Of a stretch of DNA of 64,000 nt, positions 1 through 44,886 are shown piece after piece. The DNA comes from Lepidodermella squamata. Taxonomy: Eukaryota; Animalia; Gastrotricha. Below the pieces are notes generated by a model, which had not been told where the DNA came from, made no database searches, and worked only from the letters and a program-made list of their open reading frames with translations. How positions within the stretch are numbered: the stretch's first letter is position 1; every line of letters starts with the position of its first letter. Location: assembly GCA_047495785.1 (NCBI GenBank), contig JBLDXI010000030.1, positions 1,364,001 through 1,428,000 on the forward strand, read 5' to 3'. Made by a program: the position numbers and the translations under genes.

Positions 1-2204
1 TCGATTTGATTCGATTTTAGCCCAAACGTCGCAAGCAAATTGATGAAATAATCGGCCGTACAAAAATAAATTTGAAGAATCGCGCAATTGGAACAAATAA
101 TTGTAATAATCCAGATCCGTCAGTTTCTCATCGCATGTCAATGACTTCTTCATGTTATAAGTCCAACCGGGATTCCCCTCGGGAAACAACAAAACGTAAT
201 GAAGCGGATCGTAAAGAGGAGAATTTTCATTAACACGTTGAAGACCGCCTTCACGTAAACGCAATACAACATCGCGCGGCTGTCAACGTGAAAAGAATTA
301 TTAATGGTGTAAAATAGCATCTTTTGAAATATCAACTCACTTCTTTAATTCCAGGGTCATCAGGAATTAGAGCAGCGACTTCTGAAGACGTCGGTAAATT
401 GTATCGCCTCTTATCCATTTCATTAGGATCGCAACGTAAAAATAAATTCAAATTCGGAGAGTTTCGAAGAATTTCATGAGCTTGTTTGTAAATGGCCACG
501 TAAGGATTGAAATTATGAAGTTCCGCTTGGATTTCAGCGACCAAGACAGGATTCAAGTTCTTCAAGTGTCGCAATCGATTAGTAGCTTCATTATCGCTAT
601 CGATAATGTACAGCTGAGCAAACTTGGGAATGTCTCCTGGAACAGGTTCAAGTGCGCCGTGTGAATGGTGTAGGCTTCCACAAAACCTGAAGGTTGACCA
701 TTCCACACTTCTATCGAGACCGGGTACCCCCAAAGACGTGAAAGCGAAGGCTGAATTGAACGCGCGTACTTCACTGCGAAATGTCTTGCCAAGAGGCGAA
801 TTTTCGAAGAGCAGCTTTTTGAACAGCGGTGTAGGCTGAGGGAACGGTGGAAGTACGATTTTCCCATTAGCACAGCAACGAAATGAAGGGTTGCCAATGG
901 TTGACTTGTCAATTTTTTCCTTCATGAAGAATATAGCATTGCAGTGGCGACATTTCGACGATAACTGTCCAATATTGTTTTGGTTAACTTTCCGCTCGTC
1001 ATTGAACTCTTTCCGAGCAGCAAGACGTAACCTCTTCACGCCTTTAGGGCGACCAGCGACTGGAGCCGCTTCGTTGACGAAGTTCTCTAACTCCAAATCA
1101 TCTACAGAAATGAACAATTGATAAAAACGGAGGGTCTCGAAATGGAGACATTATACCTCCTTCCAAAAGTCCGTCGATGGCCGGAGCAGAAGGCAGGGGA
1201 GTTTCTTGGCGTTCGATTCCGCCAATGCCGGGAATGTCCATTTCATCGTCAGACAATTCTACTGGATCTACATAACATGGTTAACGGAATTTAGGATTTT
1301 TTATAAACAATGAAATCTCACCATGAACGTATCTGCTAGTGGAAGGGGCGTCAAGCATAGAAGTTGGTCTCTTGACAGCTGAATAGGAAAAAGGGTAAAA
1401 AAAAAAAGATATCGTTTCGACCAATCATTACCAGTTATAGTGGGTGAAGCAGACTTAGGGTTTACAGGTGTGAACCTGAACCTTGGCTGAGGCGAGGGCG
1501 AGGACGCCGGTGAGGACAGGCGAAGCGATGCTATTGGAATAATAGGAGTTTGGGGTCGGGGAGAAACTAAAACAAAAAACAAAAAATCTTAAACGCTTAG
1601 GATTCTAGGATGAAAGCACCTTTACCTGACAATATAGGTCTCGGTTGTCTGAAACATGCTGCAGATTGAGGCCTTACAGTCACAGGCGTACCAGGATTAA
1701 GTGCTCGCAAGTACTGCGGGGGGTTGAACGCTGGAGGAGAAGCCAGTACTGAACAATCGACATACAAAGAATCACTCTGTTGAAATGATTAAATTGTGAT
1801 CCTACTTTCATCATCTACTGCTGTATTGCTCCTCTTCGGCGGAGGGCCTATAACAACGGGACCGCTAACATTACGCTGAACGGCGACCAATGATGACGGT
1901 CGAATTGGGGGAATAGCGGGAGGGGAAGGCAATTCTAATTTGAGAAATCGAGTGAACACATTTCATGAACTGAATTGATGTGCTTACCTTCATCTTCGCG
2001 AAAGGGTGTTGCCCTTTTAGGCGGAGGTCTAATCATCACAGAGGTGGGAGGGTTCATGGGCCTGAGCACGACCTTTGGAGATGCAGTAGATGCTGTAGCT
2101 AAATTCAGGCTTGTTAAGTTAGTAGATTATATTGGTGAAACATGTCTACCTCCATCTTCTGCTACTGCTTGCAACAATCGAAAAGGAACCGGTTTTCGTG
2201 ACAT
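1..2204 (-). mobile_element. Helitron Rep/helicase gene, 5' part, spliced; runs off the left edge
   Basis: Exon 341..1101 encodes CRHCNA...CCANGKIVLPP...RAFNSAFAFTSLG...PKFAQLYIID...RRYNLPTSSEVAALIP. After a 61-nt GT-AG intron (280..340), exon 1..279 encodes PRDVVLRLREGGLQRVNENSPLYDPLHYVLLFPEGNPGW...YYNYLFQLR...GRLFHQFACDVWAKIE. These are hallmark Helitron helicase-like N-terminal motifs. Upstream Pro/Ser-rich exons and the ATG at 2204 are less certain. Confidence 0.9.
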
Positions 2205-3511
2205 GGCCACGAATGTCAGCAATACAACTGTACAAATGATGTCACGCAGACGAACAGACATATGCACACGTAGACACACACACATGTACACACATAGGGT
2301 TAAGAGTTAACATAACCAGAACTGAGAAGCCAACTATACAAAGCTGAAAGTTAAGGTTGAGAAACTTTAACAACTCAGAACTGAGCTAAGAGCTAAGAAC
2401 TATACAAAACTGTACACCTGCCTGCTCGCAGTAAACAAAAAGCAAAGAAACAAATATAATACACTAAGTACTCAGTACTCGATACTCGATAGTCGTAAGT
2501 AGTCAGCAGTCAATGGTTGGATCGTCCTTAAACCGTGATTAACGCAAGACAACGGGCGGAGCCGTTTAATGTAACAATTTAAACTCCTATATATAAACGC
2601 AAGTTAAAATTGTCATTCTCTCTGCATAGAGAAGCTGTGCAAGAGGCCTGAGGACATGAAGTCCTTCTTGAGGTATCCATAACACACGGACGCTAGACGG
2701 CGGTTCAAAACTGCCGCTGCGCGCCGCCGAAATCAAAATTTAAACTTTTCAGTTTTTAACACATGTTTGATTAAATTTTAATTTTACAAATTAAAAAAAA
2801 TTATTGATCAAATTATTCAATTTAAAAAATTTATTTTAGGAAATCGGGGGTAAGAAGCGCTTTTCGAAAGGGAAGTATTTTCTTAGTAGATTAGATTACA
2901 CCCAAAGAGGGAAGCTTGACAAAGTATAAGGAAAACAACATATAATTGCAGGACAGGATCACATTTAGGACAGGAAAGGTGTTGTAGAAGAAACAAAGTT
3001 ATAGAATTAGGATTAGAAATACACGTCAATGTGTATATATAAAAATATATATAAATAAAAAAACAAAATGCATTTCAGCAGTATAAAAATAAAGTGTATT
3101 CAATCAGGTCCATTTCAGTATCAGGAATTAAAGTATATAAATCACAACAAAGTGTATCAAAATCAGAACCAAAATGATGATCACTGGGATAATTTAGCGG
3201 CATTCATTCCGTAGTAGTACTGGTAAACTACCTCGCGACAATTCTCGGCCGTTTCAGATTGCTGTGCCTCAAGAGGAAGTTGGTTTCTTTTCATTACAAC
3301 TGCTTTGTCCCAAAAGCGATTGGTGTTAATAGAAAAGATATGTAAGCCGGTGTTAACTTCCACGAGTTTCAACTGAGAAGGATTAATTATGCAGAACTTC
3401 TATTATATAGGCCGCTTCAGGTCTACTAAATGATAGATCATGAAACTAAATGACAGGGCAATTAATGATCAACACCAATCGTGTGCGATATTTTGCAACA
3501 ATATTCTAACT

Positions 3512-3660
3512 CAGTGGTTCTCAAACTATTTTCGCTCCCGGCCAAAAACGGCGGCCGGCTGGCGAGCATTCCGGCCGCATTGCCTCTTGAACCCTCAACC
3601 GGCCGCTTGTAATGATAAAATAGAACCTTTCCGGCCGCACGCCTCTAAAATCGAGAATTG
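3512..3660 (+). mobile_element. hAT-like element terminus (CAGTGGTTCTCAAAC), truncated
   Basis: Starts with CAGTGGTTCTCAAACT, a hAT/Charlie-type end. A homologous reverse-complement copy lies at ~61940..62075 and a shorter one ends at ~56995. Confidence 0.6.
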
Positions 3661-18180: not shown

Positions 18181-21100
18181 ATGTGGTTTCGAAGTGCGGT
18201 AACCCTACTTGTGACTTTGCAGCTAGCCCTCGAAGGTAGACTCAAATTTTGTCGAATTGTCCTCACAAGATTTAAATATCCTTTCCAGGCCAATCAGCAT
18301 GCCTTGGATTCAGAACTGTACCCGGACAGTACCAATACATGAATGGCTCAAGCGAGGCAACGTCCTATATTTGGAAAAACGTAGCTGAGGAAGATGTGAT
18401 GAAGTCGAAAAACTTCAATGACACGATTCGAGTGATGCTGAACAGTCACGTTGTAAGCACACATCGATGCCAGATCGATGATACATGGGACGTGCCGCCG
18501 AGAAATTGCATACCTGGTGGTAAGACATTTACTGAGAATTTTTCGAAGAAGATAATTTGTCTTCCAGAATCGTGTCCTAATTCCGGAATTTGTGATAATA
18601 GCGGTATATGCAAGTGCCGGTTTGGGTTTCAAGGCTCATATTGCGATAGCAGTAAGAGGAATTGCTTCGAAGTAATGTGCAATTTATAAAAATTTTGCAT
18701 ACAGCTGAGTTCTTTGGTATATGCATGTCGTCTTGTGGCACGATTGATTGCCTGAGTAGTTTTGTTTGCCAATGCCCTGGTAATAGATTCGGCCCAGCCT
18801 GTAAACATGATGCGGAAAAACGATTCAGCAACGCTTTTTGGTACATCGCACCGTGGACTACAATTCGTGGCGTTCAAAGTGGTGTACTTCAAAATTCATC
18901 CTTCGGAAACAATTCCCTTAACCAATGGCGAATTTTCGCAGATGCTGGGAAGGTTCTGAGGTTTTCAAAGATGTACCTGGTAGCAGTTAATGAGAGTGGG
19001 GATCAAATTACAGAAGATGAGGTTCGTATCGAATTTTACGAGGCTAGCTACACTGTCTCCTCTGGCTATGGAAGACGTTTTGCTTCGTTCAAGGCCAGCG
19101 ATCTTGGACCTGGGAATGACGCTAACATCACCAGCGTAGGCTCTTCAGTTCTCGTTTGGATCACCACAAGTGTGAATTCAGTTTACTCCCGTTACGAAAT
19201 TTTTTTCGAACAAGTAGATGCCGAAGTTCCAACCCCTCCAAGTGCAAAGAAAGTCCCGGATATCTATGAAGCCTGTAACGCCTTGGTAACTATCGATTGG
19301 CCCTTCGATGAAACGATCATCGGCGTCGAACCGACAACTCTTGTCAATAAATTCTCTAACAAATGTACTTGGCGCTTTAAAATTCCAGACGGGAGTTCAC
19401 TTGAGTAATTCGATTTTCTATCCCGTTTTCAAGATTAATATCATAAATTTTTCAGGTATGCTTTGCTTAACTACACGGCCAAGGGTGATAACGGTTTTTA
19501 CCTGGAAATGAATACGATAAACTACGACACTGGCAACGTTTTCACATGGATCTCATCAAATGACATCAAGAACAGCGAGAGGATGCTACCAGGGAAGATG
19601 ATGGCCGTTAATTTTGTGAATTCCCATCGCGAGTTTCATGTCTTCTACACGTCAAGAGGCAGCAACTCGGAAAAAACAAATGGATTCTACATCAAGCTGA
19701 AAATGAGTTTCGTTATGCTTTTTTATGTTGCTTATTGATTATCTTCCATCCAAAGCATCGAGCACTACAACGGTTGCGAATTCAAGCACAACAACGACGA
19801 GTCTTGCTTCGCTGAAGAGTAATGTATCGAGTACTACAACATCATTAACAGCGGTTGTGAGTTCAAGCTCTACGACGACGAGTTTCGGGTCGCTGAAGAG
19901 TAACGTATCGATTACTACGACAGCGATCTTGGATTCAAGCTTCACAACAAAGAACCTCGCGCTGATAACGAGTAATGCAAGAAATTCACAGATCAAGGAA
20001 GCGACGGCGATTGATCAAGTTTCATTGTCCGGGCAAATGTCGGTGATTGAAAAGGCTGCGGCTGCTTTTCCAACGCTACCCGAGGAAACAGCCACGCCGA
20101 GGCTGCGAGATTCAGATATTTTGAATGGGAAGTGCCACGACTTCACGGCTGACAGGAGCGCTCCTCCTAACAACGGTAATGCAACTGATATCGGGACGAT
20201 TTTCGTCATTGATCAGTTCTTCGGAATCAAAGAGGTTGATGAGACTATTACGATATCGGGAATCATTCAGCTCCGATGGAACGTGACGACGTGCAAGCGA
20301 GAAGATATTCCTGTCAAAATAGAAGGGCCGGAACGTGTGTTTGTTGGCGATATGTCAAAATTTTGGCTGCCTCCGTTAACATTCAGATCAAGCCCAGACA
20401 ATGTGTACATGATCGACAGCCAACTAGGGGACGATTTCGTATTCGTTGTCAGGCCTACTGATGACATTTTCCTAAACATGCAGTTCTACTGGTCGAAGAT
20501 AGGTGTTTTCGAGTCAACCTGCGATATGGACCTTCGAAAGTTCCCTTTCGATACGCAAACTTGCGAGATCGAGTTCGGCATTCATCGCTCTGTCAATTTG
20601 ACGGCATTTTCTGAGCTAAAAATCATACCACCAGATGACCTGTCCCCCGTTGCCCAGTGGCAGATTCTGCCTGAGGAAACAAAATCCAAAATCAAACTGT
20701 TGTCTGCTCCGACCATTGGTAGCAAAGTCAGCGTGGCTGTTTTCTCGCTGACTTTCCGTAGAAGGCCCAACTACTATCTGTTGAACATCATTGGGCCTTG
20801 CTTGGTTCTAACATTCTTAGAACTGGCTGCTTTCCTCATGCAAGCCAACAAGCCAGATCGAGTGATGTTCGTAGTCACTATCCTGCTGGCTCTTACAGTT
20901 GCCCAGAATCAGGTCTTGCAAGATGTCCCGAAAAGTGCAGCGATGATCCTCTTGACCGAGTACATTTTCTACATGTCGATCTACACTGGGCTGGTCAGTA
21001 TGTACAACCTGTTTCTCGGCTATTTCGCGACTGAAATGGCAAAAGCAGCCAACAAGATGCTGAAATTCGGCTGTCTCCGCATTTCCGTCTTGAGTTCGCT

Positions 21101-21182
21101 GAATGCAATCGGCTTCGCAATGGCAGTTGCTTTTTTCTTCGGAATCAACATGTACGCGATGTATATTCTCAAATACGAATAA
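18181..21182 (+). CDS. EGF/CUB/mucin-fused Cys-loop ligand-gated ion channel subunit, paralogue A1 (~915 aa; exons 18181..18235, 18289..18519, 18568..18651, 18705..19404, 19456..19706, 19756..21182)
   Basis: All five introns are GT-AG, 48-53 nt, and the exons sum to 2748 nt in frame. Signal peptide; EGF-like CKCRFGFQGSYCD and CQCPGNRFGPAC; CUB-like WRIFADAGK...ITSVGSSVLVWITT and CTWRFKIPDG...VFYTSRGS..GFYIK; S/T stalk; Cys-loop CDMDLRKFPFDTQTC; RRPNYYLLNIIGPC (M1) and four TM helices. Confidence 0.92.
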
Positions 21183-21567
21183 GGCTGATTGATGAGACTT
21201 AAAACCTAATTTTCATAATTGGACTCATTCTATATTCGGTGATATCAGCGATGACGAGCTGGCTAATGCCCAGCTCTGAACTTAATTCTCGATCTATTCA
21301 TGCTATTTCTATGCTATTGTATACTATGTTTCGTCCAAGATTTAATATAATCCTTCTCGAAGAAATAACAGACCTGTTTAGAATCGGAAATATTCTAAAA
21401 TATTATCATCAGATTGTTATTGGATTCGGACAAAAGTAGGAAATCGATTGGTAAAATTACGTTTTCATCCACAACATTCAATCAATTGGAGTTACGATAT
21501 AGAACTTCATATCATCGACATTTGCTATTATGGCTAAAGAAGTAACGATTCCTACGCAGAGGTGAGA

Positions 21568-22793
21568 TTAAAATAACATTTCTCTAAAAAGTAAGAAGTC
21601 AGGTATTGTAACAGCCAGACAAATGATTACAAAAGCCGCTATATCCAGAGCTCTGATGTAGGTCAGTTTAGAGCTGGTAAAGCATCTCCGACACCAGGCG
21701 AGATTAGCCACGCCACATGTGACAATCGTGTAGATAGTCAAAACGCCGCCAGCGACGAATTTCCACGTAATCAAAACAGAGATGAAGACGACCTCAGAGG
21801 ATTCTGGAGTCAGCGATGTGATGGCGCTCAAAGTCATTGAATTCGCTAGCACAGCTGTTATGTTTATCGCAGATCTAGGAAAATAATCAATAACAATTCG
21901 AGATTAAGTACTTCTAAATAGATTTCTTACCTATTAGGGTCACTTGGGTCGATGATTAGGGCGATCATTTGAATGAAGAATAGCGTGAAAGGTGGTATGA
22001 AAATTAAAGGCACGTAGTAGATCGCGCGGCGTTGCAGCGTTACATTGTAATTAATTTGGTCGTAAGATGAATGTCTACCAGTTCTTAGATAATCATTAAC
22101 CTGCACGATTGAGACGAATTGCCAAACTTCAGCGCTGCTGAGGAACTTCGGAGTCACATCATAAGGTTGCATAGTGAAGTTGTCGTCGCTTGTCAAGTGG
22201 CTTGAAACGAATTTCAGACCGCAAGAAAACTTGTCGAAAGGAAATTTACTAAGCGAAACGTCCATACAACTGGATACAAAGTTGCCGATTGCAATGATTG
22301 ACGCAGTGAAAACTCGATTTTTGCTCGTCACTTTGATCCAATCGCTCTTCGTTGCCATGACATTAGGCTCGCCATTAGCTGTATTCTCATGCAGGACTTT
22401 CGGGTACCAAATTGGCCGGTCCTCCGGGCGGCCAACTGGTAGGTTCAAGGTGATTTGGTCTTTCCTGCATACGATCTTAGATTGGTTGTTAGTTAGCACG
22501 GAGCATTCGACTGGTTTCTCGCAATTGTAACGCCAATCGAATTGAAGCGCGCCGAAAATTGTCATCGTTCGTTCTACGTCATTGATGTCAACGAGACGGA
22601 GGAAAGTGAACGAAGCATTTACCGCCAATGGTTGCGGATTAGGGCAGCGTAGCTTCACATCGACGGGTAGATCGGGCGATGTCATGTCGGGGTAACTGTT
22701 GGTTAAATCGTCCCATACCTGAGAGATAGTCGGCTTTGTTGAGGCACAAACTGGGGCAAACAGAGATAGAATAAAAGCTAGTCGAAATTTCAT
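21568..22793 (-). CDS. Divergent Cys-loop channel subunit, clade B1 (~389 aa; exons 21931..22793, 21568..21874)
   Basis: Signal peptide MKFRLAFILSLFAPVCA; loop CMDVSLSKFPFDKFSC; LQRRAIYYVPLIFIP (M1); PNR|SAINITAVLANS (M2); the intron splits the Arg codon. Confidence 0.9.
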
Positions 22794-23497
22794 TGCAAAA
22801 TGCGGAATTGAAGCACTGGAAAAAATTAGGGTTGATTGGAGCAGCGATGAGCAAGGCGGAAGTTGGCAATTTTTCAAATATTTACTCGTATAAGCGGAAT
22901 CATTCAGTGAGGCCATTATTTTCAGTAAAACTCGAAGCCGGAAATCCGACAGAACCTCTCCTCTGGGATTCGGAATTAGAAGTTCATGAACTAGGCCAGG
23001 GATCATGTTTATTAACCCTAAAAGCTTCAGCATTTCAAGTAGGGTGCGATCTTGGATTCTGGAGCTGCCAGGGATGGACAAAAATTTGTTGCTGCATTTG
23101 CCGAAGTCATTTCAGGTAAAAAATCGAGCGAAGCGAGAAAATTTGAAGTTTTTCCACTAACACACGCTCCAAAATCTCTGAAAATTTACGAATCAGTGGG
23201 AATCAGTGAGAACTCTTCAGAACTGTCGCGTCTGATTTTTCTGACCGGCTCCTGTCCGTGTTTGCAGTCATAAAAGAGAATTTAGGGACCTTAGTGGGAC
23301 TAATTGAGTAATTTTGAATCTGAAAGTCCTATTTTGAAAGCATATTATTCTTAGAAATCAGGGTGCTTGGTGCTCAATAAATCCTGAAATCAGCCGGGCC
23401 GAGAGAGCGATATCGACAACATTTCAAACAGTCTTAACTGGGATAGCTAGAGACATGCAGGTTTGAAAATCTTGATCAGGGCCTTCGTAAACTACTA

Positions 23498-24568
23498 CAG
23501 TGTGGTCTGAAAATAGTAAAGGAACGCGCATTTCTTCAAATAATTGCGTTTTCAGATAATGATCACGAGGCTAATCAATTTCTTCAATCTATTGATCAAC
23601 TTCAATTCAATGGCGCACATCAGATTAGACAATTTCGACGGGGAAAAGGAAATCAGTCCGTATAATTTAAAAATCATAAAAACAAAATCGTAATTTGAAA
23701 TAAGGATTAAGAGAGGAGAGGCTATGTTAAAGAGAAGGTTCCTGGTTGCACCTGCGAAAGATGACCCAAAATATCAAAGACCTTTCCTATATGTATATAG
23801 TTGGCTCCAAGCATAGCCCTGTAAGCAGAAAAGCCATATTTAGACTAACCCTTACGGAGTCATCGTGCAGGTGGATCTTCGCTAAGCATGTGTCCCTACC
23901 GCCAATGTCGCCGAATTCACTAATATTTCAATGATAAAAAAGCAGATTTTCAGGTCAAGAAATTTTAACGAAGGAAATTTCCCAGGTTCTCAAACTGTTA
24001 ATAACAAGTTCAACAACACCTTAAAAGGCACTTTAAATTCGTCTTCTACCGAAGAATTCCAATTAATTTGGAGTTCAAACCTTTCGTAAATACTTTGACG
24101 TTTACGTAGAATTAGCTCTTTTTTCCTAGATTCGCGTCTTCACCTTCACTTATGCCTCACCTCAATAACTAACTAGGCCAGATAATTGAAGGTATGAAAA
24201 GGCATATTATTTTTTCTGTCACAAAAATAAGTCCTAATCATTGTGCTAGAACATTTCACTTTTTCAAATTTTCTTCCGGGCTCTTCTCTTACTGCGTGTC
24301 TCCTTCACGGATATGTAATTAGGTAACTCTAAACCGCGTTAGTTTATAGCTTCGATAAACAAGTTTCTGAATTCTTTTTAATAAAGTCAATTTCCATTTA
24401 AAATAATAATTTTTTTGAAAATGAAAAAAGCTGATGGAGAAAATGAACTCCAACTACTGCGTAGATACAAGTTCATGTGCCCATCACATGATAACCATCA
24501 TTCAGTTTAATTTTCAACTACGATTCGCGAATTTTAAGTCGCAGCTTTACTAGTTTCAGACCACACTG
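23498..24568. mobile_element. Tc1/mariner-like non-autonomous element
   Basis: 24-bp TIR CAGTGTGGTCTGAAA(A/C)TAGTAAAG with TA on both sides. Confidence 0.85.
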
Positions 24569-24857
24569 TATAAATGCTATTACTACTGGAATCTGAAAAA
24601 TATTTTTCCCTACCTGATATCAAGACTTCTGCCGTGGTTTGCGAAGGATTTTCTGAATCCGTTTGGCCTGTCCTTTTCGCGAGGTCAAATGGATGTTTTT
24701 CTCCGATATTATTATTGCTGTTGACTCTGCGGCTATTCCTGTAGTAATAACACATTTATGAAATACGAAAATAGCTCTGAAACTTGCAATATCCTGTTTT
24801 ACAGCTGGGATTCATCTAAGCCTACCCTGCGTGTCAGAACGCATTTTTGATTTGAAA

Positions 24858-27800
24858 ATGTCGTTCAAAAAATTGTTCACCGTTGTTGCAATGGCGCAGC
24901 TAGCCTGCAAAGGTGATCTTAAGAATTATAGAAAATACCTGAGTACTTCATACATTTATTTCCAGCTCTCTCGGCTTGCCCTGCGTTTCGAACAGCTCTC
25001 GCCAGATACAAGTACATGAATGGTTCAAGCGTAGCAAAATCTTACGATTGGCAGGATATTCCGGAGAGTGATATCCCTAAATACACCAACTTCAACGATA
25101 CAATTCAGGTTTTGCTCAACAACAAAAATGTCAGCCAGCATCGATGCCTTCAAAATAATTTGTGGGACGTGCAACCATCGAACTGTGTTGCAGGCGGTAG
25201 GTGACCTGAACATTTATAAGTATTATAAAGGATAATATATGCCGTACCGTAAAAGGCGAGATCTCCCAATTGCCAATTGAGGTATCTCAATGAACAATCC
25301 GAATCGTCCCCAACGTCATTTTCAGTTATTTTAAGAAGTTTTAAGAATATGGAAACCAAACAACTTTGCAGAATCGCCCTTCGCCTATCCAACAGATACC
25401 ATTTTCCCTAATAACTTGTAAGGTATTTGTGTGTTTTATGAGTTTTTAAAAAGTTGGCGGATTTTCGCTGTAATTGGGCTCTGTTATTGGGCCTCCTCGG
25501 CTCATCTAAACTCTTTAGTAGTCTGTTAGCAGACCAATCGATAGGACTATTCGGGCTCTCTGATATGTGCTAGGTTTTCATTCAATAACCTGAAGACTGA
25601 TGAAAACAAAAGACGAAAAGAAATTTTCAGATTGCTCATTGAGATATCTCAATCGGCAATTGGGAGGATTGCCTTTAACGGTACGACATATATGTCATAT
25701 TAAAGATTGGTGTGTCAGTTACGGGAAGTGTAACAGCACTGGTTTCTGCAATTGTGCTTATGGCTACAGTGGCGATTATTGCGATAGCCGTGAGTGAATT
25801 TTCTATGTATTTCGAGTGAAATTTGTCCTTTTCAAGTTTATCCGGCAAATCAATGCTCCCCGCAGTGTGGCAACGGCCAATGTATCAACGGATTCTCCTG
25901 CAAGTGCCCTGATAAGACCTTCGGCCCGTCATGTCAGTATTCAGCCGATAACCGAATCACTTCGCAATACTGGTTCATCTCACGGAGCACAACAATCAGA
26001 GGTTTGCAAAATGGCGTCATCGACATTGAATGGCTTGGATATCTGGCGCAACATCAGTGGAGAATCTTCGCCGATACAGGAAAAGCTCTGAAATTTTCAA
26101 AATTGTATGTTGTCATGGTAGATGTCGATGGGAAACGGGTGGATGGTAACGCAAGTCGCACGGAATTTCTCGACGCAGGCTACTCGGGTGTTGCACCCAG
26201 CCTAGGGCTTTTCAGCACTAGCCAGATGGGACCTGACAATACAATATCTTTCACCAGCAAAAGCTCTGCAGTACTGGTCACTTTCAACACAAATGAAATC
26301 TCATGCTATGTGCATCTTCAAATATATTTCGAACAAGTTAGCGCTGAAGGCTCTCAGTCAGCTCTCGGTTCTCAAGTGTTTCCTGAGATCCCAGGTTATT
26401 GCAACCCCCTGACAACTATCGACTGGACATTTGATGAAGCCATAATTGGTGTCAAACCAACTACACTTGTGGATAAAATGAGCAGAATATGCTCGTGGAG
26501 AATCAAAATACCAGACGATCGGTTACTTCAGTAAGTCCTTTTGCGAGCCTTGTTACATATTCCCTATATCGCATCCCCTTACAGATATGCGGTACTTAAC
26601 TACTCGGTTTCGAGTGGATCAGCAAGAATCCTAGCCTTGCATCCCATAAATTATGAAACAGGGGAAGAGTTCGTCCCGTCCTACTTTTACACAGATTCAT
26701 CATCGGAAGCGAAAACTACCGAGCAATTAACGTCAAGCCTCTCAAATGCTGACAGAAGTCGGGAATTGCAAGTTTTCTACCATCCAAGGGGCGGCTCGCA
26801 AAGTCAACTCAGCGGATTCTATGTCAAATTGAAAATGAGTTCCGTTTGAAATTTGCATAACATTTTTGATTCACTTGTTAATTTCCAGTAAAACTGAACA
26901 TCTCAACAACAAGCACAACTTCGAGCGTTGCAACCTCAACTTCGTCCATTCAGACTAGTACAACTTCAAAGACCTTGACCACGACTGTTATTGCATCGAC
27001 TATTCCAACCACAAGGCCAACAGCCAATATTGCATTTTTTAAGGCAGTTGCGAATACTACGACACGTTCGATTGCTGTTACGTCACCAATGCAAACAACG
27101 ACTCGTGCTGTTAATACAACTTTAGCTCCAACCACGACTCGAGTAATCGAAACAACAACCGCTCCAACAACTACTACGACAACTCCTGCCCCACCACCGC
27201 AGACACTCTCTGTGGAGCAGAAGGCAGAAGCTGCGATGCCTCAGCTAGCTAAAGAAACTGCTACGCCGAAAATTCGAGACTCGGACATTGCGAAGAGCTC
27301 ATGCCACGACTTCTCGGCTGACAGAAGCGCTCCGCCCAACAACGGCAGTGCAACTGACGTCTCAGCAATTTTCGTAGTCGACCAATTTTTCAAGATCGAC
27401 GAAGTTGCTGAGACAATCACTTTGTCGGGTATAATTCAGCTGCATTGGAACGTTTCGACTTGCAAAAAGGAGGATATCCCAGTTGACGTTGACGGTCCTT
27501 CTCGAGTGTTTGTGGGCAGTAAAGAAGACTACTGGCTGCCCCCACTCACATTCAGATCAAGCCCTGATAACGTCTACATGGTCAACAGCCAACTTGGAGA
27601 CGACTTTGTCTTCATAATCAAGCCGTTCGATGAAACTTATCTGAACATGCAGTTCTACTGGTCGAGAGTGGGTGTGTACACGTCAACCTGTGAAATGGAC
27701 CTTCGAAAGTTCCCGTTCGATACCCAGACTTGCGAGATCAAGTTTGGCATCCATCGCTCTGTCAATCTTACTGCATTCTCCGAGCTGAATATGATAACGC

Positions 27801-28351
27801 CTGATGCTCTGTCGCCAGTTGCCCAGTGGGAGATTCTGCCTAAGGAAACGAAATGGGAAATCAAACTGCTGTCTGCTCCGACCATTGGAAGCAAAGTCAG
27901 CGTGGCTGTTTTCTCGCTAAGCTTTAGGAGGAGGCCCAACTACTATCTGTTGAACATCATCGGACCTTGTTTGGTTCTCACTTTCTTGGAATTAGCTGCT
28001 TTCCTGATGCAAGCAAACAAGCCAGATCGAGTGATGTTCGTTGTCACGATCCTACTCGCGCTGACAGTAGCCCAGAATCAGGTTTTGGAAGATGTCCCGA
28101 AAAGTGCTGCGATGATCCTTTTGACCGAGTACATTTTCTACATGTCGGTCTACACTGGATTGGTCAGCTTCTACAGCCTCCTGCTTGGCTATATTGCGAC
28201 TGATATGGCAAAATCGGCTAACAAAGTGCTGAAGTTCGGCTGCCTACGCATTTCAGTCGTGAATCTGCTGAATGCACTCGGTTTCGTTATGGCTGTGGCT
28301 TTTTTCTTCGGAATCAATCTTTATGCGTTGTACGTTCTCAAGTACGAATAA
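24858..28351 (+). CDS. EGF/CUB/mucin-fused Cys-loop channel subunit, paralogue A2 (~926 aa; exons 24858..24912, 24966..25196, 25706..25789, 25837..26530, 26585..26838, 26889..28351)
   Basis: Exons 1-3 have the same lengths as A1 (55/231/84 nt) and intron phases match; total 2781 nt in frame. Cys-loop CEMDLRKFPFDTQTC; TM region nearly identical to A1. Confidence 0.92.
25236..25693. mobile_element. MITE inserted in intron 2 of paralogue A2
   Basis: ~65-bp imperfect TIRs (ATATATG(C/T)CGTACCGT(A/T)AAAGGC...CTCAATGA.CAATC.GAA). The equivalent intron in A1 is only 48 nt. Confidence 0.85.
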
Positions 28352-30736: not shown

Positions 30737-31951
30737 TTAGTTAAGCATTAATTTAAAAAGAATAAAGTCTGTGATCGTAACAGCCGATCCAATGATGAGA
30801 TATGTTGCTAGATCAAAAGCCCGCATATACGTCAACTTTGTTTGACCAACACATTTCTTGAACCAAGCAACATTAGCCAGGCCACATGTGACAATCGTGT
30901 ACAGGGTCAAGACGCCGCCGGCCAATAATTTCCACGCAACCATGACAGTGATATAGACGACCTCGGAAGATTCCGGAATCATCGACGTGATTGCAGCAAT
31001 AGTCATCGAATTCGCTAGAACAGCTGTAATGTTCAAAGCAGATCTTTTGAAAGAGAAAATGATCACTTTCCGTGGACAACAATTCATATGACATCTCTAC
31101 CTATTAGGATCAGCTGGGTCGATTATTAAGGCGACCATTTGGATGAAAAACAACGTATAGGGTGGTATGAAAAGGATAGCTAGATAGTAGATGGAATCGC
31201 GTTGTAGCGTGATTGTATACTTAATTCGGTCGTAAAACTTGTTGCCGCTTTTAGAATAATCATTTTCCGTATCGATCGAGACAAAATTCCAAATTTCTGC
31301 TTCGTTTATGAAAGTTGGAAGAACCCTAAACGGCTGCATCGTAAAGTTGACGTCGCTTGTAGGATGGCTCGATACAAATTTCAGCCCACAAGAGAATCGA
31401 TCAAACGGGAATTTTCGAAACGAAACATCCATACAGCTAGATAGGAAATTTCCTGTCGCTTCCATCGTTGCTGAGAACACTCGATTTTCACTCGTTACCT
31501 GTATCCATTCGCTTTTTGAGGAGATTATGTACGGCTCGCCGTTTGCTGTGTTCCCGTGAACAGCTCTCGGGTACCAGACTGGTCTCTCTTCTGGGAAGCC
31601 AACTGGCAATTCGAAGGCGATACTGTCGTTTTTGCAGGCAGTTATCGAATGGTTGCTTTCCAGCAATGAGCAATCAACTGGCTGCTCGCAATTGTATAGC
31701 CAGGTGAATTGCATCTTTCCATGGATTGTCATCGACCTTTCCACGTCATTGATATCGACGAGTCGGATAAACGTGAATGAAGCGTAGACTACCAGAGGTT
31801 GAAGATTTCGGCAGCTTAATCTAGCATCGACGGGGAGATTTGGCGATACTATGTCCGGGTATTTGTTGGTAAGATCGTCCCAAATCTGCGAAATAGTACA
31901 TGCACAGTTGTCTGCGAACAGTGAGAATGCAAAAACAATGCCTAGTCTCAT
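30737..31951 (-). CDS. Divergent Cys-loop channel subunit, clade B2 (~385 aa; exons 31101..31951, 30737..31043)
   Basis: Signal peptide; CMDVSFRKFPFDRFSC; same intron position as B1; four TM helices. Confidence 0.9.
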
Positions 31952-34617: not shown

Positions 34618-35836
34618 TCAACTTAGCATTAATTGAAACAAGATACAGTCAATGACTAAAATCGTAACGCCAATCACTAGGCCTGCCCCCCAAGTCGATA
34701 GCTCGAATGTACTTAGTTCATGTTCAAGACAGGAATGAGTTTCAGATACGTCAGATCATTCGCCTTGCCACATGCGACTATAGTATGGAAAGTTAGCAAT
34801 CCTCCAGCTCCAAACTTCAAAGCAACCATAAGAACTATGTAGACCAACTCGGAGGTCTCGGGAATCATGGCTGAAATCATGCCAAGGGTGACAGAATTCG
34901 CAAGGACAGCCGTTATATTCAAAGCAGACCTGAAAAAATTGTTAAATTCTTGCAAAGAATTAGTGTATCAACCCACCGATTCGCGTCGGCTGGGTCCATT
35001 ATCAGAACAGCTAATTGAAGAAGGAACAAAATGTAGGTCGGTAAGAACAATGTAGGCAGGTAATAGAAGTAATCACGTTGAAGGGTGACCTTATAGGAAA
35101 ATCGAAACAGGGGTGCAGGGCCGATGAGCTCCGACTCACTCTCCGATGTAATCGAAACAAACTTCCATATGTCTGCGCCGGAGATGAAATCTTTAGAAAT
35201 TAGAGGCGGATATAATAGAAAGATGATAACATCACTGCGTTGATAGGTCGTTATGAAGCTCAAAGCGCATGAGAATTGGTCGAAAGGAAATTTTCGAAAG
35301 GAAACAGCCTTGCAGCTTGACTCGAAGTTACCACTAGCTGAAAGGAATGCTTGAAACGTTTGATTCATACTCGTGATTTCAATCATCTCTGACTTGGTCG
35401 ACATAACGTAGGGCTCGCCACTTGCAGTGTTTTCGTGATAGATTCGCGGGAACCAAACTGGCCGCTCGTCTGGGAAATTGATTGGCAAATTGAAGGCTAT
35501 GAGGTCATTGCGACACGCCTCCTGTGATTGGCTGTATTGCAGCCTCGAACAATTAACAGGCTGCTCGCAGTTGTGGAGCCAAGACAACATCATAGATCCG
35601 ACTACGACCATACTTTTTTCGACGTCCTTGACATCAACGAATCGGTAGAAACTAAACATAGTGTTAACTGTTACAGGCTTAGGCTGTGGGCAGAGAAGCT
35701 TCACGTCGACTGGCAGATTTGGCGAGAGGATGCTAGGGTAGGTTGCGGTGAGATCATCCCAGATTTGTGAGATCGTAAGTGGCGGGGTGTCACTTGCAGA
35801 TACACTCACAACGGCGAGAATCACCAGCAAATTCAT
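34618..35836 (-). pseudogene. Clade B3 Cys-loop subunit with two frameshifts before and in M4 (exons 34977..35836, 34618..34929)
   Basis: CKAVSFRKFPFDQFSC. A 4-nt insertion (AACT) gives a stop at 34713, and there is an extra G in a G6 run. Correcting both restores KYIRAIDLGAGLVIGVTILVIDCILFQLMLS, matching the paralogues. Confidence 0.8.
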
Positions 35837-36309
35837 CGTTAAATCCGCGACACCGAAAGAAAAAATGATCAAAATCTGCATTGCCAAGCATTTTTCGTGA
35901 TTCAAGCTACCGGATATTGGCGATTTTCGCAATATATCTCTATATTGACATTGGGCTATTGAATTTTTACAAATTCCTAGCCTTAGAGTTGTGCTCAAAT
36001 GAAAAAAAAATCAACGTGGTGTTTCTGGGCCAAATTTTTGGACTCCGCCCTCTCCTGGATTGTGGAACCACGCGAATTAAAGGTTCCGGAAAACCGAACA
36101 GCTGCATTTTTCGTTGATTGAGCACACCCTAATTCTTGGGACTACTATTAGTCCCAACCCCAAATTACGAAATAACAAGTACATAAATTCAGCAAAAGAA
36201 TGAATTCCTGGGTGCCATGCCTCCCCTGAATCTATTGACCTTCCTTCTCTATCCAGATCAGCCAACTTCAAATCCATGGTCCAAGTATACAGTTAGTAAG
36301 GAGAGGAGG

Positions 36310-40789: not shown

Positions 40790-43584
40790 CTACTGCTTCT
40801 TGCCACGACCTAGCCCTGAAGGCCTGAAGACGAAGAACTGCCAGTTGCATTGTAAAGCCGCACTCGCAACGGCAACGCGTCGATCGCCTCGTGGTCTCGG
40901 TTGTAGAGGACGGCGCGCGATTGCGACCAAGGTCGGCTGGAAGACACACTTTGAGCAAATTAGCAGCTTTGATTTTTGCAAGCGCTTCCTTCTTCAGCTT
41001 ACGCATGGTGGTATTAAAGCGAATGCCGCCGGTGTGTTTTTCCACACTGACATTAGAGCCACCATGAATGCCAAACTGGCGATTAGCCACTTAGCCGCGT
41101 AAACCAAAATGTCAAAAACTGGTTGGTTTCCCGCCCCCGCATTGGCGAAATTGGCTAAAGAGCTGCTCGAGACCGTCTTGATTAAATCGATTAGCCATCA
41201 CAAACGGAACGTTCAGTTGAAGACATAATCGGGCGACTTTGGGAAAATTGGTCGATGTTAGAATGAACCCCTTGAATTTGGCTTCATTAAAAGCCGTACT
41301 ATAATTTCGCTGGCTGTTTTCGCGATTCCTATCTTGCAATGCTGTTAGTCGATGAACGAACTCAGTCTCCAGCCAAGCGAGACGAGGGTCGTCGCCAGAG
41401 GTGTAAGGCTCAAGGGCTGGATTTCTCCTTCGCCCGTTCGTAGGTAGAACCGTTCAAACAATCAAACCAGTCATTGAAGAGTTGGCAAAATTCGGCTGTG
41501 GCTTTCTCATTTTTGAGGGGAAGCAGCGTTGAGAAAGATGGTGTGGACGTGGTGGCGAGTGACACGAGGAATCATTCGCCACTGCTGCTTTTTGTCCCAA
41601 TCGAAAAGCGCTCGAATAAGGTCCCAGCTGACGCAGCCGCCGTTAGTCATCATAAACCGCTTGTGAAGAACGTTATTTCGAGCACATTTCAATAGATGGG
41701 GAACATCTATTAAAATGTAGATGTCCCACTCGGGGTTGCAAGGGTGCTTGAACCAGTCGCCACCAACGCTGTTGATCCATGACCAATTGGTTCCACCGCC
41801 ACCCATGACAGTGCAAATTACGCGCGAGCAGCCGATCTCGTACAAACGACAGCATGACTCGGGGATAGCTTGGTGCATAAATGCAGCGCCGCATTTTTTG
41901 GTGACTGGGTAGTCGGCGATGTTGACTTGCAAGCCAGTTTGAACATAAGTCGCAATGAAACTGAGCATGTTTTCAGCTCGTTGATTCGGATCGTCCAATG
42001 CCATTCTGACAGTTTGGCCATCTCGGGTTGGGGTGGATTTCACGGCCCTTGAAACACTGACTTAATCGCACGACAGAATGAAGAGGCCTTTTTTGCTGTT
42101 GAAGTCGCCGTTCATTTCTGCTTATTCTTAAAGCAGCTTGTAAGCAACATCGGACTGCCCGCCCCAATACTCAACGGCTAAAAGGCTGTAGATAACGCTC
42201 GGACGGCAAGACGAAGCGTACAAATAGTAGGAAGCCGAGGGACTTCGTAAATGAAGCGCCATCGCGTAGGCAACAAATTTGTCACTGAAATGGTGGTGCT
42301 TAGGATCTTTAACGCGAAGTTCTAGTTGTTCTTCGAAAAATTCTAAATTCTGAATCTTGAATTTCGGCGGTGGATTGCGTCAGTTTTGCCTCCAGCTCCG
42401 CAACGCGAGATACTAAAAACAGAATTTTTGAATTAATTAAAAAATTAAATTAAATTAAGGAAAACTAAGGTTGATTTTTTAAGGAACAAACTAACCTGGA
42501 TAGCCAAAAGAAGACATATGCGACACAAAATCGGCAACAATAGCCAACGTATCGACGGACGATGATGGAGGTGGCGTGGGAAATGGGGTCGAGCAAAATC
42601 GAGGGATGGAATTGACGGTTTCACCGAGCGGAACTGTAAAAAATAAATCGAAATTAATCGAAATAGACCTTTAAAAATTCACCCAACTTGCTATTCAATT
42701 TTTGTTTTAATTTTGAAAGACAGCGTCCGAATTGTTAATCACCACCTTTACTCAAATTATCAACAATCGAAACTCAAATAATTAATGAAACATACCAATC
42801 TATATTATAAATTAATTACATACTCCTGTGTCTATAAGGCAATGTTAATGTAAATACCCGCAACACAGACCACCAATAAATCCGTTTCTCTCTCTAATTT
42901 TAAATATTTGAAAAATAATTTCAAAGACTAGAATATCAGAATATCAGTATATAAGAAATATCATTCAAAATTTTATAAATATATAAATGCAACATAATTT
43001 ATCTAAAAATTATCAGAGCGCAATATTTCAAAATTTACATGCATTTTCTAACCGGCTTCGTTTCGGCTTTGCGAAGAAACCGTAATCTGGAGTTTCAGCT
43101 GTCGATGATATTAGCGAAAACAACAAGCTTTCTCGGTCACTCAGGGCCGCGTTACACAGCTCAAGTAAATCAGGGCGAGAGACGGAAAGCGGCGTAGGTG
43201 TAGGTGTCAGCCTGTATTCAGAGGTGGACTCATCCTCGTGGGCAAGGCGTTTTAAAACCCTGGCCGTGTAACAAGGACGAGGTTCCCTATCAGCATCGGT
43301 CTTTTCTACTCGTGAAGCCTTGACCTTCCCTTTCAGGAGGCATAACGATGCAAGAATCGTGCAAGAAAGTTGGCAACAATGAATGTTACGGCAAATTTAA
43401 ACTCAGCCTTCGGCTCGCTAGTTTTGACAAAGCGCAGCGCTAACATGAAAGCCTAACCGCGGCGGTGGCGGCGTAACTTACGTCCGTACGGTCCGTACGG
43501 TGAGCTCATTCACAGACCAAAGGGGGGACCCTTATGTCGATTTTTCCAGTCCCTACCAGTTCCGCGGGCCTACTTCGCTCTACG
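40790..43584 (-). mobile_element. Degenerate P-element (THAP9-like) transposon
   Basis: DVPHLLKCARNN and FVMANRFNQDGLEQLFSQFRQCGG are P-transposase motifs, with multiple frameshifts. The terminus at ~43490..43584 matches the MITEs at 53577 and 36310. The left boundary is undefined. Confidence 0.85.
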
Positions 43585-43869: not shown

Positions 43870-44540
43870 TCTCAAGAGCTCAGCCCCATCTCACGCAAGT
43901 CGCTTTCAGTCGTTGCCCACCAAGTAGTTCTTGGCCGCCCGACCGCTCGTTTGCCCTGTGGTGTCCACCGAAGGGATGTCGGCCGATATTGGCCGGCATT
44001 TGCAGATATGCTGGAGATCCTCATTTTAGACGATCTTCGGCCAGAAAATGCCTTGAATTCGTCGGAGACGGCGGTTGTGGAATAATTCCAGCTTTTTCAC
44101 GTCAGTCCCTTCCCCAACTCTCGTGAGCACTTCGAACCGTACACCAAGACTGCCTTGACCGTGCACTTGTAAATACGCTTCTTGGTCGCCTTGCTGAGCT
44201 GTTTCGATCGCCAGACCGCCTTCAGCGAGGAGAGAGCGTGCTTTTCTTTCTTGAATCGAGAGACGATATCTGCGTGAGCTTCGTCAAGGCTGATAACACT
44301 GCCAAGGTACGGAAACGTCCTGGATGATGATCGGCCTCTTGTCGCTGGTGGCGATACGCATGGCCTTGCTGGGAATTGAGAGAAGAGTGATGCCTCGCCA
44401 ATTGTCGCTTTGGTATCTTCAAGATCAATCAGCCAAGCTTGGTGCTCGCTCTTCGAGTTAGATCTCTCGAAATAAACACTTAAGCGCGCTGGCAGTGGTA
44501 TCAACAGCAGCCTTGAGCATTTCGACCGTAATTGCGGCCG
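43870..44540 (-). mobile_element. RTE LINE 3' fragment
   Basis: FPYLGSVIS...VWRSKQLSKATKKRIYKCTVKAVLVYGS; similar to 6345..6975. Confidence 0.85.
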
Positions 44541-44542
44541 TA

Positions 44543-44886
44543 ATCTTGAGTCATCGTAGTCATCTCTCTGATCTCTAACCATAGCACCTGGAAGCATCTA
44601 ATATTGATTTTCGAATTCCTCGCACTTGATTTAGTAATGAATGAAATGATCTTGTATAGAGAAGAGCTTTACTCTGTTGGTCTCAAAAGATCTTCTTCCC
44701 CCATCACAGGACACGATGATCTCCCTAGCTTGCCATACAAGCTCGTCAAATGACTTTGGGCGAATATGATCTCGAAAAAAGATCATTTCATTACTAAATC
44801 AAGTGCGAGGAATTCGAAAATCAATATTAGAAGCTTCCAGGTGTTATGGTTAGAGATCCAGAGAGATGACTAAGATGACTCAAGAT
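44543..44886. mobile_element. MITE with ~105-bp inverted arms
   Basis: ATCTTGAGTCATC...GAAATGATCTT is mirrored at ~44779..44886. Confidence 0.8.

Follow-up and report, generated by a model that had tools for sequence, protein, structure and literature searches.

Two tandem genes in a 64,000-nucleotide stretch of the genome of the gastrotrich Lepidodermella squamata (assembly GCA_047495785.1, contig JBLDXI010000030.1, positions 1,364,001 to 1,428,000 of the forward strand; this whole stretch is called here the window, and all coordinates refer to it) appear to encode subunits of a pentameric Cys-loop channel of the cation-selective, acetylcholine-receptor branch, in which the ligand-binding domain (LBD) is preceded by a large extracellular head. 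The two paralogues, gene A (18181-21182) and gene B (24858-28351), lie on the plus strand, and the order of the parts is the same in both predicted proteins: a signal peptide, a module of about 70 amino acids, two EGF repeats, a module with a predicted CUB fold (module 1), a second module (module 2), a stalk, the LBD and the transmembrane segments M1-M4. The gene model that unites head and channel in one polypeptide is, in our judgement, very probably correct.

The DNA of the window is of animal type with very short introns, and the exons were read directly from it. Joined at GT..AG sites, they give a protein of 915 amino acids for gene A and of 926 amino acids for gene B, with zero internal stop codons in both. 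Each gene has five introns, all ten of which are bordered by GT and AG; they fall at aligned residues and in identical phases (1, 1, 1, 2, 1) in A and B, and the first three exons measure 55, 231 and 84 nt in A as well as in B. Nine of the introns are 47-54 nt long. The exception is intron 2 of gene B, which measures 509 nt versus 48 nt in A, because an inverted-repeat element of about 400 nt was inserted into it; this element looks like a miniature transposon. An earlier note, which was made from the sequence of this DNA, had described two paralogous channel genes with a fused, EGF-containing head and with GT-AG introns at shared positions. Its exon 5-6 junctions (19706/19756 and 26838/26889) and its protein sizes (about 915-926 amino acids) proved to be exact, the agreement of the intron positions extends to the phases, and the fused architecture was borne out at the DNA level by intact six-exon frames and by the constraint on the head exons. 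The features of the two genes are as follows.

18181..18235, plus strand: gene A exon 1, ATG and signal peptide (18 codons plus one base), hydrophobic leader; GT donor at 18236
18289..18519, plus strand: gene A exon 2, N-terminal module (aa 19-95) and the first Cys of EGF1
18568..18651, plus strand: gene A exon 3, EGF1 (Cys92-Cys121, a span that includes the exon 2/3 junction)
18705..19404, plus strand: gene A exon 4, EGF2 (Cys130-Cys156), predicted CUB-fold module 1 (aa 165-295, approximately), a linker and, from Cys314 onward, the first third of module 2
19456..19706, plus strand: gene A exon 5, remainder of module 2 (aa 357-440)
19756..20069, plus strand: gene A exon 6, 5' part, Ser/Thr stalk of mucin type (aa 441-545)
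20070..20759, plus strand: gene A exon 6, central part, segment preceding the LBD, then the Cys-loop LBD itself (aa 546-775)
20760..21182, plus strand: gene A exon 6, 3' part, M1-M4 with about 20 residues between M3 and M4, then the stop codon
24858..24912, plus strand: gene B exon 1, signal peptide
24966..25196, plus strand: gene B exon 2, N-terminal module; equal to its A counterpart in length (231 nt) and phase
25263..25666, no strand assigned: inserted element with 41-nt terminal inverted repeats (25263-25303 and 25626-25666, 90% complementary), inside gene B intron 2 (25197-25705)
25706..25789, plus strand: gene B exon 3, EGF1; 84 nt, again matching A in length and phase; weak EGF-family Pfam matches
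25837..26530, plus strand: gene B exon 4, EGF2, predicted CUB-fold module and start of module 2; 45% identity to gene A exon 4
26585..26838, plus strand: gene B exon 5, remainder of module 2
26889..28351, plus strand: gene B exon 6, the stalk (aa 440-556) followed by the LBD and by M1-M4

Fusion is supported by the requirement that the LBD be extracellular, since exon 6, which encodes the channel, has no signal peptide of its own in either gene. The sole in-frame ATG upstream of exon 6 in gene A is intronic, and a polar Ser/Thr run comes after it. Exon 6 of gene B altogether lacks an in-frame ATG that could serve as a start before the LBD, and its frame opens at a TAA (26879-26881) located 7 nt ahead of the acceptor. 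For comparison, in the conventional channel gene that lies between A and B on the minus strand (21568-23081) the signal peptide stands directly before the LBD. As the sequence reads, the fused architecture would be the only one that places the LBD of A and B outside the cell.

The comparison of the paralogues leads in the same direction. In every head exon the nonsynonymous differences between A and B (pN 0.30-0.45) are far below the synonymous ones (pS 0.66-0.79). The synonymous differences of the head are saturated, thus the paralogues must be old, and the low pN argues that the head frames are translated and constrained; by this measure the head exons are under purifying selection. The six-Cys spacing of EGF1 becomes canonical only when the 48-nt intron between exons 2 and 3 of gene A is removed, and intron 5 (49-50 nt) has its donor, acceptor and phase conserved in both genes.

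A different interpretation would be that there are two genes at each site: exons 1-5 would encode a secreted EGF-CUB protein, exon 6 would be a separate channel gene or a gene fragment, and the fusion would be an artefact of the way in which the DNA was read. We consider this quite improbable, although merged gene models do exist in databases (the Adineta protein with NHL repeats and a channel, see below, resembles one) and the only RNA-type run gave no spliced read over 19706/19756. The putative genes would be separated by merely 49-50 nt, bordered by GT and AG in the same phase in both paralogues despite the saturation of synonymous sites, the frame of the Ser/Thr stalk opens right at the acceptor, and the channel exon would have to function without a signal peptide and, in B, without a start codon before the LBD. 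The RNA-type coverage, which spans exons 4, 5 and 6 and ends at the gene end, and the greater length of the record joints over introns 4 and 5 also speak against two genes. In favour of a separate head, read-through at the exon 5 donor leads to a stop, after 10 codons in A (19707-19738) and after 3 codons in B (26839-26849). Retention of intron 5 would therefore yield a secreted head without stalk or channel, and such a product might be a soluble isoform.

It must be noted that the RNA evidence is weak and consists of one small RNA-type run, whose records are short and contain odd opposite-strand joints. The run covers only 19086-21252 (exons 4-6 of gene A), with zero depth on both flanks and in the neighbouring gene. 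Depth increases toward the 3' end, and part of this rise may be due to cross-mapping from paralogue B, with which the transmembrane domain (TMD) is 88% identical at the protein level. Nine record joints that do not straddle an intron measure 67-115 nt (median 102), whereas the joint over intron 4 measures 153 nt and that over intron 5 measures 173 nt. The former exceeds the median by 51 nt, exactly the length of intron 4, and the latter by 71 nt, as compared to the 49 nt of intron 5; as a signal of splicing the long joints are suggestive only. The spliced exon 5-6 junction was also looked for, as an exact sequence, in metagenome contigs and gave no match, but this negative is uninformative because the exon control gave nothing either.

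The assignment to the Cys-loop family rests on the channel half of the proteins. The Pfam Neur_chan_LBD profile matches with 47.2 bits in A and 50.4 bits in B (cut-off 26). In a PDB search the closest solved relative was the delta chain of the Torpedo nicotinic acetylcholine receptor (nAChR; 2bg9_C, E 1.3e-21), aligned from the LBD through M3; it was followed by nAChR alpha-6 and alpha-7. In this nicotinic branch M1-M3 can be aligned (E 1e-21 to 1e-17), and much weaker matches were obtained with GABA receptors. The Cys-loop has the C-x13-C spacing (Cys696-Cys710 in A, Cys707-Cys721 in B) and contains the FPFD motif within 'RKFPFDTQTC' in both proteins. A Kyte-Doolittle scan exceeded its threshold at M1, M2 and M4, and M3 is supported by the nAChR alignment of M1-M3. 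The segment before M2 reads KPDR; its acidic residue occupies the site diagnostic of cation channels, and the mid-pore Leu has been retained as well. Only about 20 residues separate M3 from M4. It is this loop through which classical receptors bind intracellular clustering proteins.

The agonist site of nAChRs is an aromatic box with a Trp in loop B and a Tyr in loop C, to which alpha subunits add a vicinal Cys pair. Loop C of A reads KLLSAPTIGSKVS, and there are zero Cys residues between the Cys-loop and M1. Residues 711-741 of A, the expected loop B between the Cys-loop and beta-9, contain no Trp and no Tyr. Loops B and C of A and B were tentatively assigned by their position in nAChR alignments. 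Since the Cys pair of loop C and the Trp/Tyr of loop B are missing, the classical acetylcholine site appears to be absent. Judged by these residues, the core of the channel departs from that of a classical receptor in two respects: the acetylcholine-binding residues have been lost, and the M3-M4 loop is nearly gone.

The LBD and the TMD are the best-conserved parts of the two proteins, with identities of 76% and 88% and with ratios of nonsynonymous to synonymous change (dN/dS) of 0.14 and 0.09, respectively, thus the predicted channel body is clearly under strong constraint. With a pS of 0.46-0.58, the channel half (20070-21182 versus 27239-28351) also has far fewer synonymous differences than the head (0.66-0.79); gene conversion of the 3' half may be the reason, or stronger codon constraint there. 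Identity to any channel in the databases did not exceed 25-30%. Our first homology search with the channel was swamped by Ser/Thr words; when the search was restricted to the channel part, it returned only two mollusc proteins, 25-26% identical. The proteins of this genome itself are evidently missing from the protein collections that we searched.

The head extends over about 440 residues ahead of the stalk in each protein. Its N-terminal module contains in A one pair of cysteines (Cys23 and Cys79) and two N-glycosylation sequons, and is 49% identical to that of B (exon 2). We had considered a Sushi-like fold for this 70-residue module, and dropped the idea because just two Cys were left after EGF1 had been assigned. 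The two EGF repeats of each protein are recognized by a six-Cys pattern, C-x-C-x-C-x-CxC-x8-C (Cys92-121 and Cys130-156 in A). The Pfam EGF_2 profile matches EGF1 of A with 22.5 bits, barely over the cut-off of 22.1; the matches of B and of the second repeat are below it. The stalk is a low-complexity segment of 105 (A) and 117 (B) residues with a Ser+Thr fraction of 0.45 and 0.44, as compared to 0.15-0.16 elsewhere in the protein, and it is only 25% identical between the paralogues. From its composition it is presumably O-glycosylated and mucin-like. Both the EGF-like repeats and the Ser/Thr stalk had been recognized in the earlier note and are upheld here, the former by the two six-Cys patterns and the latter by its 44-45% Ser+Thr content.

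Module 1 is about 130 residues long and contains no Cys in A and one in B. An AlphaFold2 model was made of the segment encoded by 18815-19243, with the B copy as the sole other row of the alignment (pLDDT 74.8, pTM 0.73); it replaced an earlier model of the whole of exon 4, which had a pLDDT of 45 and gave non-significant CUB matches. With the module-1 model the best Foldseek match was a spermadhesin (1spp_B, E 1e-5, TM 0.70), and the other top matches were CUB domains of PCPE-1, C1r, Kremen, neuropilin and TSG-6. VIA-align gave Z values of 9.5-12.3 over 95-119 aligned residues, with all of the top 50 entries being CUB domains; in the best match (Z 12.3) 110 of 112 residues were aligned at 2.3 A. 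A shape search of the ESM Atlas found CUB clusters with TM 0.64-0.67, and by protein-language-model features 67 of the 100 nearest clusters were CUB (score 0.83). At the level of sequence the picture was different: the CUB profile (PF00431) of Pfam matched no piece of the head at E up to 10, nor did a profile of module 1 match anything in the PDB as a whole under the same limit, and the two disulfides (four Cys) conserved in CUB domains are not present in module 1. On the evidence of the model, module 1 is best described as a predicted CUB-fold domain that has neither the disulfides nor the sequence signature of the family.

Module 2 follows after a short linker, which is proline-rich in A. 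It comprises about 127 residues (aa 314-440), is divided by intron 4, has one Cys pair (Cys314/Cys344), and shows 48% identity between A and B (aa 313-440). The sequence with which it opens, Cys-x29-Cys-x-W-R-x-K-I-P, resembles in our reading the beginning of a CUB domain, the Cys spacing being like that of the first CUB disulfide. Relatedness of the two modules by internal duplication was examined with hhalign, which detected no relation. The proposal of two CUB-like modules in the earlier note thus stands in part: for module 1 it holds at the level of the modelled fold and fails at the level of sequence, and for module 2, whose pieces had no match, the CUB assignment was not confirmed.

Several observations weigh against the picture drawn so far, and should be considered together. 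No record of the small RNA-type run shows a clean GT-AG skip or the exon 5-6 splice; the run is tiny, its records look chimeric, and some DNA carry-over is possible. The Pfam Neur_chan_memb score was just below the cut-off of 28.1 bits in both proteins (27.4 in A, 26.0 in B). In the head, the N-terminal module matches no Pfam family at E up to 10, and the pieces of module 2 have no family match in Pfam (E up to 10), in the PDB-profile search or in the Atlas. A phmmer search with exon 4, the largest exon of the head, found 0 matches among 1.84 billion representative proteins; the head being without detectable relatives, nothing can be transferred to it from homologues. As to function, the anchoring role that we propose below is one of several ideas that fit the anatomy.

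We tentatively favour, at slightly less than an even chance, the interpretation that the head is an extracellular address or anchor acting in cis, whereas gating still takes place at the LBD. A and B, as old tandem duplicates, would each supply one type of subunit to a pentameric channel. Five heads per pentamer would be held well above the LBDs on extended, probably O-glycosylated tethers, where they would bind a partner in the matrix, on a cell surface or in secreted form. Binding of this partner would position or cluster a channel lacking an intracellular loop for scaffold proteins, and gating would remain the task of the conserved LBD, through a small ligand or an ion. We infer anchoring from the missing intracellular loop, from the types of modules in the head and from the poor conservation of the stalk. 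The stalk could carry tension or just hold the head. Being long, of low complexity and only 25% identical between the paralogues, it is unlikely to transmit a conformational signal.

This last point is relevant to the idea put forward in the earlier note, of a channel gated or tethered by proteins, surfaces, matrix or force. Tethering is plausible. In the gating version the head itself would open the channel, either by binding a protein, glycan, surface or matrix, or by tension of the stalk, so that the pentamer would be a contact, chemotactile or mechanical sensor and not a transmitter receptor. The absence of the classical agonist-site residues would suit such a sensor, as would the avidity provided by five recognition heads per channel and the purifying selection on the head. 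Tension could pass through 105-117 residues of poorly conserved low-complexity stalk, but a conformational signal hardly could, and the good conservation of the LBD between the paralogues (76%), loop C included, suggests that it keeps a role of its own. We regard gating by the head as rather unlikely. Somewhat less likely still, in our opinion, is a wider version of this idea, in which a Cys-loop channel has been turned into a family of modular surface receptors with interchangeable adhesion or lectin heads (EGF-CUB in the present case) carried on mucin stalks, opened or primed by contact with a macromolecule, glycan or matrix, or by force. If it were true, it would mean ionotropic contact, immune or gamete sensing without a neurotransmitter.

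That A and B do not conduct, and are adhesion or scaffold proteins using a degenerate pentameric ligand-gated ion channel (pLGIC) body as a pentamerising membrane anchor, is improbable: the lost agonist-site aromatics, the minimal intracellular loop and the low Pfam scores of both channel domains would fit, but the TMD is the most conserved part of the proteins (88% identity, dN/dS 0.09), the acidic ring before M2 and the mid-pore Leu are kept, and the FPFD motif of the Cys-loop, which couples the LBD to the pore, is intact.

The window contains three more Cys-loop channel genes, all on the minus strand and belonging to a different clade (21568-23081, 30764-31951 and 34919-35998). Pfam detects Neur_chan_LBD in all three, and they are 19-30% identical to A over the aligned channel segments. 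The first of these, at 21568-23081, has no head and has an ordinary signal peptide. Between 29359 and 30645 on the plus strand there is an open frame of 428 amino acids, which consists almost entirely of ankyrin repeats (Ank_2, E 2e-40). Two open frames on the minus strand (41507-42043 and 44097-44597) gave weak matches to the TNP-like GTP-binding insertion domain and to DUF6451, and are probably remnants of mobile elements. In the intergenic segment 23026-24000 the word depth of the DNA run climbs from about 100 to 1000-3600 with many loose ends, which indicates a high-copy repeat. Rfam gave no match within the window. A scan of the intron 5 region for bacterial-type promoters and terminators was empty, a type of scan that is irrelevant to an animal gene.

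It is instructive to compare A and B with channels of known structure or function. Animal Cys-loop receptors have a fixed two-domain design that is found in textbooks. With the nAChR branch (Torpedo delta, human alpha-7) A and B share the LBD signature, the C-x13-C loop with FPFD, M1-M3 and the cation-type residue before M2. They differ from it by the presence of about 545 residues before the LBD region, by the lack of the loop-C Cys pair and of the loop-B aromatic residue, and by an M3-M4 loop of about 20 residues as opposed to 80-250 in nAChRs. The chemotactile receptors of cephalopods are also members of the nAChR branch that lost acetylcholine binding and were recruited for other cues, but their stimuli are small hydrophobic molecules, sensed at the LBD, and they are not known to carry extra N-terminal modules.

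To our knowledge, accessory domains ahead of the LBD have been studied only in bacteria, in DeCLIC, whose N-terminal domain sits directly atop the LBD. DeCLIC resembles A and B in having such an accessory domain in a pentameric subunit, and in its short M3-M4 loop. The difference is that the modules of A and B are of animal extracellular types (EGF, CUB fold) and that a mucin-like stalk separates them from the LBD; a relation by sequence is lacking too, the profile of the CUB-fold module having found nothing anywhere in the PDB up to E 10. Extra N-terminal domains are reported from some prokaryotic pLGICs, that of DeCLIC being described as the only one solved (PMC9897478, PMC12664993).

A second comparison is offered by proteins that act on ligand-gated channels from outside. 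LEV-10 and LEV-9 at the muscle acetylcholine receptor of C. elegans, NETO proteins, and SOL-1 at GLR-1 are CUB/Sushi proteins that cluster or modulate ligand-gated channels. The anchoring proposed for A and B would be an in-cis counterpart of this activity. The CUB domain of Neto2 in complex with GluK2 (9n4q, 7f59) is among the structures matched by the model of module 1 (Z 10-10.9). The likeness is that CUB-fold modules act on the extracellular side of a ligand-gated channel. The auxiliary proteins are separate polypeptides working in trans and have no sequence similarity to A and B, whereas in A and B the modules are parts of the subunit, hence each pentamer would carry five of them.

The earlier note had also suggested that the architecture is undescribed. 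In full-text literature searches we did not find a fusion of an EGF, CUB, lectin or LDLa domain to an animal Cys-loop channel, and a published inventory of the pLGIC family (PMC4795631) makes no mention of N-terminal, fused, EGF or CUB domains. The suggestion holds in so far as no paper with this architecture was found in the literature searched; a claim that such fusions are absent from animals would be too strong. Arthropod clusters of the ESM Atlas (63-252 members), which surfaced as structural neighbours of an Atlas hit and not of A or B, include predicted proteins that join Neur_chan_LBD with Ldl_recept_a, Pentaxin or Lectin_C. These involve other module types and another phylum, and were compared by the domain labels of the clusters only. 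A further candidate precedent, P0003 of Adineta steineri (849 aa, NHL repeats followed by a nicotinic-type channel), was rejected as most likely a merged gene model, because its relatives with 72-88% identity are channels of 493-497 amino acids without NHL repeats, and another relative carries RING domains.

Set beside these systems, the channel predicted from A and B is a eukaryotic pLGIC with a built-in adhesion-type head, uncharacterised and lineage-specific. The head is an example of a CUB fold that is invisible to sequence methods. If the transcripts are confirmed, A and B will provide a eukaryotic case of adhesion-type modules built into a channel subunit, with five copies per receptor, and will bear on two more general questions: whether an N-terminal appendage can position, modulate or gate a channel, and whether an extracellular address can replace the intracellular M3-M4 loop as a scaffold-binding site.

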